This document shows positions 13,002-16,000 of a DNA stretch of 64,000 nt, piece after piece. A program made the position numbers and the translations under genes. Position 1 is the stretch's first letter; every line of letters starts with the position of its first letter. Location of the stretch: assembly GCA_964035545.1 (NCBI GenBank), contig OZ037771.1:9107408-9171407 (forward strand), given 5' to 3'. The DNA comes from Bugula neritina (Eukaryota; Animalia; Bryozoa). A model generated the notes under the pieces. That model worked only from the letters and a program-made list of their open reading frames with translations, was not told the origin of the DNA and did not search any database.

Positions 13002-16000
13002 CTATCCGTCTACTGTAAGCGCAGCATTAGATAATACGCTGTAATAGACCCAGTACCAAGCATTAAATATTAGAAACAGAAGTGGAAACATCAGTCTAGA
13101 ATACTTATCAATGTTATTCACATCCTTCACTTCTGGTAGTTTGCTTTTTATGTCTTTGGCTCTTTGTCGTATGTTCACCCACATTTTACGATCTCGTTGA
13201 CTTTTCCCTTTGACTGGGTAACCAGAAGGACGTCTCAGCCGGGCAGTATTTTCTATCTGATGATCCTCATCAAACTCAGCATGGTTGTTGTTAGCATTAA
13301 CTCTAGTGTTGTAGCGTAGCATGTGGTTCCTTTCCTCCCTCTCTTTTGGCAGATAAGAATTGATTTCTCCTCCAAAATCTGTGGTTTCTATTTCTGGCTC
13401 ATCGCTCAACTACACAAAATATAGTTATTAGTAACTCATTACTGTTTACCTGAGTACCCTGTTAAACAGTTGTCACGCACTCCCGCACAGCACGCACAAA
13501 CGAGCACAACACACACACACACACACACACACACACACACACACACACACACACACACACACACACACACACACACACACACACACACACACACACACAC
13601 ACACACATTACCATGAATGTCATAACACACACTTTGGGGTGAATAGCGATGTTGCGTATACCTATAAGTTTAAAACAAAGCAAAAGGGAGCTCAAAAAGT
13701 TACCTGAAGGCGTGTCCTAAATTGTTTCTTGGAGCTTTTGTCAAATTGAATGTGGTGAATATACTTTTTTACATACGTTATCATTAATTTTTTAGCTGAA
13801 GCAAAAAATTACTCATGTAAGCCACAAGTGGATGTATATCTACTCTCACCTTCTGATCCTCCAAGACAACTACCGCTCCATTAACTGAAAGTCTACTGGA
13901 GTCTGTTTGCACTCGTGTTGAATAAAACCCTGTCTTTGTACTTTTATTTTTATTCTTTTTCTTCACCTTGGCTCGAGCTCCCCAGAAAAAGTAATTTACG
14001 GCGGCGTATTCCAGCAGAGCCACAAACACAAACACGAAACACATCACCTGAAATAATCATTCTATAACTTACACCTAGTAGAATCTGTCATGCTAATATA
14101 AAGTGTGAAACATAATTTTACAACAGACTATAGCATCAACTTGAAATAGCAAACACCATACAATAGCGGTAAATACTATCACAAAAGTTCCGCTTGAAAA
14201 CTAATTACATTATTTTTTTTGGAGAAAATGACACTTAAACATGCCAATGTTTAACTCAGTAGAGATCAATGGGGTCAACCTTACCAAATAAATATCAATA
14301 GCTTTGACATAGGAGATCCTTGGAAGAGATGCTCTAACTCCTGTACTTATTGTCGTCATTGTAAGAACTGTGGTGATACCTGTGTACACAACAAAACATG
14401 CATTGTGAGAAGAGTTATGTGATATACATCTAATGCCTGACATTCGCCGCTTTATCAAAAAAGCTGAGGCTTGCTGACTGTAGCTAACTTCTGGAGAATG
14501 CAATACAGAAAAAAAAACTGGCTAGCGTTGGTTTAACTTTACATAAAACATTTGAGATGGTTATTTTGTTTCAATTTCTAATTTATATAATACTCCTCGT
14601 GTTGAACAAAGTTTAAGTAGCCCCAAACTCACTGATTCTGATTGTATAAAAAGTTCTTGATGGCAATAGGCATCATTGGAATAAAATAGTTATATAATAG
14701 CAGTTATTGGAGCAACTCATTTGCTCCTTTATAGCTTATCTCAGTAGATGTTGAACATACACAGACTCTTCCTTAACCCACCTAAGTTAACTCTAGCAGA
14801 AGTAGCTTCATGGCTTATCCAGAAAGACACCCAACTTAGCATTACAATCAGGATGCAGGGTAAAAATGTCTGGAACACGAAATATCCAATATGTCTCTTG
14901 AGAAGAAAACTCAGTGAAAGCCGTTGGTATCTTCCTATTAAAATATAACATTTACATTTTGCATAAGTATTTTTAATGTTTGCATTTTGGAAGAAATAGA
15001 GAGCTTTCAGTCATGTGTATTATATAAGAAACTAAAAAGTATTAAAGTTATTTTATATTCTATAGAATATATTGGACCTTAGAGAAATTTACTGCCAGAT
15101 AAACTATATATTACGCTGCAGATGTACTCAAAATGCTCAAATTGAAAAGTTATCTTCTCTTTGCTACAAACAGCTAATTTTGATGGTGTTTTAGATTATA
15201 AAGTTATTAGTAATCAATTGAAAAAATATTTTTTTGCAATATGTATGCATGAGTATGCATTTACATGCAAGTATACATGTGTACATGTAATACAGGTAAA
15301 GTATAGTACATGTATCTACAGATGTGCACACATATATATAGGCCTATACACAAAGGGACATAATGTGTATGCATACAGGTAGACATACAGACAGACAGAC
15401 TTATAGCCTACCTGATGCGAGAACTTGTATAGTTGACAGTGTATTGTAGTTAACCAAAGAAAACTGTGGAAGTTGAACATTTTTTGTTCCAACAATTGAG
15501 TTTTTACCAACTCTCCAACGCATTTCAATTTCCTCCATTGGGTAGCCATCTTGAAACAAAGAGTGTTAATTTGTGCAATGCAATGCATAATTTGCAAAAT
15601 AATTCAGTAACTAATTTAATTGCAAGAATTTAATCTGCAATAATTGCTTTTATGATAGCATGCACTGCATAGCATACACTGTATAGCATACACTGTATAG
15701 CATACACTGTATAGCATACAATGTATAGCATACACTGTATAGCATACACTGTATAGCAAACACTGTATAGCATGTTATATGGCATACATCATACTTGAAA
15801 GTAAAATGTATATGTATGTAATGTATTTATATTCAGTGTGCAAGATAAAAACTGTTTTATGGTCTTTGGCGGGTGGTTTCTTCCCTTTACTCTGTGAAAG
15901 CTAATATTTGACAATTCAATATGTTAGCTAAAATATAATTTCTAATTGTTTCTAATAATACTAGCAGTTAACAAAATTAATACTATTACTACTATATAAT

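Follow-up and report, generated by a model that had tools for sequence, protein, structure and literature searches.

A tandem pair of GABA-A beta/LCCH3-type receptor genes in Bugula neritina, one of which encodes asparagine at the M2 2' pore position

Two intact genes for subunits of the GABA-A beta/LCCH3 type (GABA, gamma-aminobutyric acid) lie in tandem on the minus strand of a 64,000-nucleotide stretch of Bugula neritina DNA (contig OZ037771.1, positions 9,107,408 to 9,171,407; hereafter the window, whose positions are used below). Copy A keeps the conserved alanine (Ala) of the beta/LCCH3 family at position 2' of the second transmembrane segment (M2), whereas copy B encodes asparagine (Asn) at this pore position. 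The best overall explanation, to which we assign a probability of roughly 0.6, is that the pair stems from an old tandem duplication, that both copies are functional and that the 2' Asn of copy B would alter sensitivity to pore blockers, gating, or both.

Self-comparison of the window yielded eight collinear similar blocks, at approximately 13.0-17.8 kilobases (kb) and 24.9-32.6 kb. Gene models were built by tracing reading frames and splice sites from exon 2 to the stop codon of each copy (Table 1). The nine exons modelled per copy have equal splice phases in A and B, all introns are GT-AG, and the open frames comprise 491 codons in copy B and 500 codons in copy A. An alternative-exon cassette was ruled out, because all exons from exon 2 to the stop are duplicated in order and each set has its own terminator exon.

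The pore substitution is located in exon 7. Reverse-complement translation reproduced the peptides and codon positions that the initial annotation had reported for both copies, and the interval it had marked proved to be exon 7 of copy B exactly, in which the AAC codon for Asn is shortly followed by the GT donor at 14781-14780. Exon 7 of copy A encodes the same peptide except for PS, WIN and Ala (GCC). Of the 153 nucleotides (nt) of this exon, 16 are not the same in A and B; 12 of these differences are synonymous, and the other four produce three replacements from A to B, namely Ser to Cys in M1, Asn to Ser at -7' and Ala to Asn at 2', the last of which takes two nucleotide changes. The M1 and -7' replacements (PS to PC, WIN to WIS) had likewise been noted before. 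Exon 8, which carries the rest of M2, encodes identical protein in the two copies and shows two synonymous differences; this identity had been described correctly, but it reflects gene conversion (see below) as well as constraint. In a phmmer comparison with the Protein Data Bank (PDB), the Asn of copy B aligned to the Ala in the ...AARVA motif of human beta3 (residue 277 of a 473-residue chain), which we take to be M2 2' by the usual numbering, in agreement with the earlier placement.

Several lines of evidence place both copies within one receptor family. PF02931 (Neur_chan_LBD) matches exon 4 (E 1e-14), and PF02932 (Neur_chan_memb) matches exons 7 and 10 of both copies above the curated cut-offs. 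A Cys-loop (two cysteines with 13 residues between them) is present in exon 5 of both, and the four transmembrane segments fall in exon 7 (M1), exons 7 and 8 (M2), exon 9 (M3) and exon 10 (M4). Exon 7 of copy B scored best in the PDB with human GABA-A beta1-3 (E 3e-17); matches to gamma2, rho1 and alpha were weaker (1e-12 to 1e-13). When 1.8 billion representatives were scanned without a profile, the closest full-length relative was a crustacean-type LCCH3 (P0084), with ∼61% identity to copy A over ∼476 residues; the relatives of this protein come from arthropods and bear the names LCCH3 or 'GABA receptor subunit beta-like'. Both copies contain IESYGYP across the exon 5/6 junction and ASGRY in loop C as candidate GABA-binding residues, the motifs loop B ESYGY and the loop C aromatic presumably serving on the principal face as in vertebrate beta2. 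The two copies share the pore hallmark of LCCH3 subunits, -2' Ser, -1' Ala and 13' Thr (PMC11037462). Judged by PDB scores and named relatives rather than by a formal phylogeny, both copies are of the GABA-A beta/LCCH3 type and are not RDL orthologues.

Copies A and B thus resemble insect LCCH3 and vertebrate GABA-A beta subunits in their receptor domains and in the -2', -1' and 13' residues. Their exon layout is like that of vertebrate GABA-A beta genes in the split of M2 after 3' and in the 68-nt exon 3 seen in copy A. Unlike in these relatives, the genes here form a tandem pair, one member of which carries 2' Asn, -7' Ser and an M1 Cys.

The polarity of the changes was read from an alignment of both copies with 13 arthropod LCCH3s and one beta-like protein from a hemichordate (Ptychodera). 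Over a 41-residue M1-M2 block, copy A shows no difference from the 13 arthropod proteins, which cover copepod, cockroach, crab, tick, spider, horseshoe crab, barnacle, springtail, fly, beetle and bee. The Ptychodera protein has a single difference, the same M1 Cys as in copy B, and copy B itself has three residues changed. All three exon 7 replacements are derived in B, at sites conserved in 13-14 of the 14 outgroups. On this comparison copy B is the derived copy and copy A the canonical one, which agrees with the canonical beta and the altered beta described in the initial annotation. In addition, 18 derived residues in exons 6-7 are common to A and B, which points to a duplication within this animal's own lineage.

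Asn at 2' was not encountered elsewhere in the family. Among ∼300 fetched proteins with a beta/LCCH3 signature, the 2' residue was Ala in 278 (93%), Ser in nine, Thr in seven and Gly in five (together ∼7%), and Asn in none; of the best 150 representatives, 126 have Ala at 2' and none a genuine Asn. A degenerate DNA pattern with Asn at 2' gave no match in JGI metagenome contigs, and the pattern with any 2' codon gave 90 matches in 22 distinct peptide contexts, all with Ala. The Thr group includes three ladybird LCCH3s, from Cryptolaemus (P0242), Henosepilachna (P0244) and Harmonia (P0262), whose M2 is otherwise invariant, and an Oikopleura beta-like protein has Ser. Ladybirds also possess a duplicated, 2'-substituted RDL (Guo et al., 2023; PMC10482695). 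Position 2' is therefore strongly but not absolutely conserved, and Ala is typical of the family without strictly defining it. The suspected rarity of Asn in LCCH3-type subunits was borne out by these orthologue comparisons, with none found elsewhere in the sample, but the position is not invariant.

To assess whether copy B is real and expressed, contigs of four public runs were aligned to 13000-18540: one of DNA (X1, possibly the source sample of the assembly) and three from other studies (X3, X4 and X8). An X1 contig (14353-14844) spans the AAC codon with no mismatches. Spliced contigs from X3 (14780-14854) and X8 (14780-14844) have one mismatch each, over stretches in which A differs from B at seven and six positions respectively. 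Because GCC would require two mismatches, it is excluded at the 2' codon, where the transcripts read AAC or a codon that departs from it by one letter at most. The X3, X4 and X8 contigs skip the modelled introns exactly, at the exon 9/8, 8/7, 7/6, 6/5 and 5/4 junctions, and were taken to be cDNA because their gaps coincide exactly with the predicted introns. Over exon 6 the RNA contigs show one mismatch to B, as against 27 positions that distinguish A from B. Copy B is an expressed, correctly spliced gene. The initial annotation had named raw reads and RNA as a check on the AAC codon and lack of expression of copy B as an outcome that would count against it; the contigs agree with the codon, and B-specific spliced contigs from three studies speak against silence. 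Exon 4 itself is too alike between the copies to be assigned, and the contigs over it run on into an A-type exon 3 end, so copy A is probably expressed as well.

The RNA contigs from X3, X4 and X8 differ from the reference at ∼3% of exonic positions (e.g. 5 of 81 in exon 5 and 6 of 95 in exon 8), and in these two exons such differences exceed those between A and B. This suggests that they derive from strongly diverged haplotypes, or from cryptic lineages that go by a single species name, in which B-type sequence persists.

Divergence between the copies changes abruptly from exon to exon (Table 1). Exons 3-5 and 8 together carry 7 synonymous differences per 95 sites, as opposed to 28.5 per 64 in exons 6-7 (Fisher p = 1e-7), and synonymous divergence in exon 2 is saturated. 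Exon 6 differs at 27 of 138 nt and in 8 of 45 codons. Exon 4 has two differences only, both synonymous, with a likeness that extends 26-54 nt into the introns, and exon 10 includes one 135-nt stretch without any difference between A and B. The simplest reading of this mosaic is an old duplication with patchy gene conversion. The pattern indicates that exons 3-5, exon 8 and the middle, M4-proximal part of exon 10 were converted, that exons 6 and 7 constitute an unconverted island, and that exons 2 and 9 likewise stayed diverged; the 2' codon of B lies 4 nt from the end of exon 7. Strong synonymous constraint on the near-identical exons was ruled out, since synonymous divergence (dS) differs ∼10-20-fold between neighbouring exons and the likeness continues into the intron flanks. 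With dS values of 0.49 in exon 7 and 0.95 in exon 6, and saturation in exon 2, the difference between the copies is far older than synthetic insecticides; an origin before these compounds had already been suggested and is well supported by the exon-wise values. The ratio of nonsynonymous (dN) to synonymous divergence is 0.25 overall and falls to 0.11 for exon 6 and 0.07 for exon 7, the conserved exons that escaped conversion, which shows purifying selection. The intact frame, the canonical splice sites, the dN/dS of 0.25 and the spliced transcripts together argue that copy B is a functional gene.

What the substitution would do to the channel can be judged by analogy. The 2' ring of pentameric anion channels adjoins the desensitisation gate. 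Together with 6' and 9', this ring, near the cytoplasmic end of the pore, contributes to the site for picrotoxinin, cyclodienes and fipronil (PMC10482695). In RDL, A2'S, A2'N and A2'G reduce block by picrotoxin, cyclodienes and fipronil (PMC10482695; PMC6121307), in line with the resistance alleles A2'S and A2'N to which the initial annotation had appealed. According to the explanation we favour, a tandem duplication took place long ago in this lineage and both copies were retained as functional, transcribed genes; gene conversion would keep exons 3-5, exon 8 and part of exon 10 near-identical, while exons 2, 6, 7 and 9 would remain apart. A receptor with B in place of A would then have one to three Asn side chains in a narrower, polar 2' ring, and such a ring would lower blocker sensitivity and/or change conductance and desensitisation. 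From the RDL alleles and the structure of pentameric ligand-gated ion channels (pLGICs) we infer that block or gating would be altered.

A number of observations weigh against this explanation. LCCH3-type subunits form no homomers (PMC11037462), so Asn would enter the 2' ring at part of its positions only, possibly with little effect. Exon 7 has a lower dN than exon 6 (0.035 versus 0.108), with no statistical signal of positive selection, and the excess of derived states in B, which holds nine of the 11 polarisable sites as compared with two for A, is marginal (p = 0.065). The transcript support for B comes from assembled contigs and not raw reads, and the single mismatch of the X3 and X8 contigs near the codon was not located, differences at piece ends being unlisted. 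Exon 1, with the expected signal peptide, was not identified for either copy. Finally, no orthologue of copy B that would attest to persistence of the Asn over time was found in another species; a search with exon 7 among exon-sized protein fragments returned 11 matches, none above 88% identity and none B-like, a blank made uninformative by the length filter.

In an alternative that we consider possible though unlikely, B was kept for other reasons, such as expression in other cells or stages or a different partner recruited through exon 6, and the 2' Asn is tolerated or compensated with little effect. Most of the divergence of B is indeed located away from the pore (exon 2, exon 6 and the M3-M4 loop), exon 7 has no excess of replacements, natural Ser, Thr and Gly occur at 2' in other LCCH3/beta-type subunits with no known consequence, and a heteromer would change only some of the 2' positions. 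Tolerance is harder to reconcile with the Ala found at 2' in 93-100% of the sampled family, within a block that is near-unchanged across phyla, with the two nucleotide substitutions that the change needs, and with the strong pharmacological effects of the same change in RDL (PMC10482695). At the other extreme, it is very improbable, and largely refuted, that copy B is a duplicate in decay or without function, or that AAC is an assembly or sequencing error. The missing exon 1 would fit such a view, as would the circumstance that the best DNA run may be the assembly's own sample, but the intact 491-codon frame, canonical splice sites, dN/dS of 0.25, B-specific spliced contigs in three further studies and exclusion of GCC by mismatch counts are all at odds with it.

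The 2' Asn might also tune ion permeation rather than toxin sensitivity, if copy B pairs with a GRD-like subunit in a GABA-gated cation channel whose conductance is raised or selectivity shifted. Cation-selective pLGICs (nicotinic, 5-HT3) typically have polar residues at 2'. A GRD-like gene with -1' Asp (...TSDRVGLG) lies on the same contig ∼16 kb past the end of the window, and the GRD/LCCH3 heteromers of fly, bee, mite and louse act as cation channels (PMC11037462). With such a partner the channel of copy B may be cation-permeable, and a polar ring would then be more likely to act on permeation. We regard this as decidedly unlikely: a search for the 13' residue in the GRD-like gene did not locate it, which leaves the cation hallmark half checked, and the pairing of B with this subunit is conjectural. 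It also overlaps with the explanation we favour, as one form of altered pore function. A more far-reaching version of that explanation is speculative and quite unlikely: the exon 6-7 island of B, including the 2' Asn, may be held apart by selection against conversion, giving a second class of GABA receptor resistant to a natural pore-blocking toxin that is dietary, symbiont-derived or self-made. If this were true, target-site insensitivity at 2' would have arisen independently outside both arthropods and RDL.

Five places in the genome resemble exon 7 of copy B: the two copies, a neighbour within the window, the gene ∼16 kb past its end, and one distant match on another contig. The M1/M2 exon of the in-window, alpha-like neighbour ends in ...AAAARVSLG, with Ser at 2'; its PDB matches to beta and alpha subunits tie, so its subtype is not settled by scores. 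The rest of M2, with the 13' residue, was not found for this gene or for the GRD-like gene within the stretches examined. Four GABA-A-type genes are clustered here, two of the LCCH3/beta type on the minus strand and the alpha-like and GRD-like genes on the plus strand, with four different 2' residues (Ala, Asn, Ser and Gly). Both plus-strand genes are candidates for the partner subunit of copy B. The head-to-head arrangement of beta and alpha-like genes recalls that of vertebrate GABA-A gene clusters.

Table 1. Positions of the receptor genes and their parts in the window, with synonymous divergence between copies A and B.
Feature	Positions	Strand	dS, A versus B	Basis or remark
Copy B, derived LCCH3/beta-type gene, exon 2 to stop	13002-18537	-		open frame, GT-AG introns, Pfam, spliced contigs
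Copy A, canonical LCCH3/beta-type gene, exon 2 to stop	24915-35030	-		open frame, GT-AG introns
Exon 2	B 18537-18434; A 35030-34933	-	2.4	
Exon 3	B 17819-17749; A 32589-32522	-	0.16	
Exon 4	B 17397-17171; A 32329-32103	-	0.05	probable gene-conversion tract in B, 99% identity to copy A exon 4
Exon 5	B 16092-16010; A 30504-30422	-	0.07	
Exon 6	B 15549-15412; A 29783-29646	-	0.95	extracellular strands before loop C; most diverged conserved exon
Exon 7	B 14934-14782; A 28427-28275	-	0.49	end of loop C, M1, M1-M2 loop, M2 up to 3'; three derived replacements in B
Exon 8	B 14379-14285; A 28121-28027	-	0.09	
Exon 9	B 14047-13850; A 27763-27554	-	0.67	
Exon 10	B 13409-13002; A 25346-24915	-	0.45	
AAC codon, Asn at M2 2', copy B	14788-14786	-		reverse-complement translation, contigs
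GCC codon, Ala at M2 2', copy A	28281-28279	-		reverse-complement translation
GABA-A-type neighbour, head-to-head with copy A	53522-58564	+		candidate partner, outside the duplicated pair
Neighbour, YDMQLRPDFGG exon	near 53522	+		
Neighbour, ligand-binding exon	56036-56296	+		
Neighbour, Cys-loop exon	∼56899-57159	+		
Neighbour, M1/M2 exon	58427-58564	+		
GRD-like gene	contig 9186299-9189442	+		∼16 kb past window end; ...TSDRVGLG, -1' Asp as in GRD, 2' Gly

Exon 3 differs in length between the copies, 71 nt in B versus 68 nt in A, with a shifted acceptor: the reading is ...KFGAKKPLVV in B and ...KFGGKPLVV in A, where the B acceptor is a prediction without confirmation by spliced contigs. Candidate signal-peptide exons can be named only as such (40165-40110 for A; 22594-22533 or 24816-24737 for B), none of them backed by reads. 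The introns and intergenic DNA around both genes contain many AT-rich minisatellite arrays with a period of 17-30 nt and up to 51 copies (1460-1819, 4455-5810, 7766-8623, 18966-19431, 20661-21059 and 35612-36740), some with a higher-order period (312 nt at 35612-36693). Related imperfect AC/GT-rich microsatellites occur at 13474-13607, 43046-43397 and 62987-63230; one of these lies inside the last intron of copy B, and the read contigs seem to be cut there.

Position 2' is the best-known site of target-site resistance in invertebrate GABA receptors. The RDL resistance alleles A2'N and A2'S of planthoppers and many other pests affect the same position as in copy B, A2'N being the same residue change, but these are recent, insecticide-selected alleles of a single gene, whereas A and B show a fixed difference between old paralogues. 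A closer parallel is provided by the old RDL duplicates Rdl2 and Rdl3 of aphids, scale insects, ladybirds, Lepidoptera, treehoppers and leafhoppers, which have natural 2' Ser, Asn, Gln or Pro, with Asn in treehopper and leafhopper Rdl2 (Guo et al., 2023; PMC10482695). As in the A/B pair, one copy keeps the ancestral Ala and the other is 2'-substituted, and the difference is older than synthetic insecticides. Unlike Rdl2 and Rdl3, A and B appear to exchange sequence by gene conversion, and B has no known ecological link to a toxin. Moreover, RDL subunits form homomeric chloride channels and are a direct insecticide target, while B is a partner-dependent LCCH3/beta-type subunit from an apparently non-arthropod animal. 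The ladybird LCCH3s and the Oikopleura beta-like protein match B in family and position, but the residue in such proteins is Thr, Ser or Gly and not Asn. No description of a 2'-substituted LCCH3 duplicate was found in the literature searched.

The pattern seen here is thus already known from RDL and is now found in another subunit class, LCCH3/beta, and in another kind of animal. The mosaic of converted and unconverted exons in A and B offers a clean example of conversion between receptor paralogues, and the natural pair would be useful for studying, in heteromers, what a partially polar 2' ring does to the binding of blockers, to conductance and to desensitisation. If Asn does change block or gating, tuning of 2' by gene duplication would be a general route of GABA receptor diversification and not a peculiarity of RDL.

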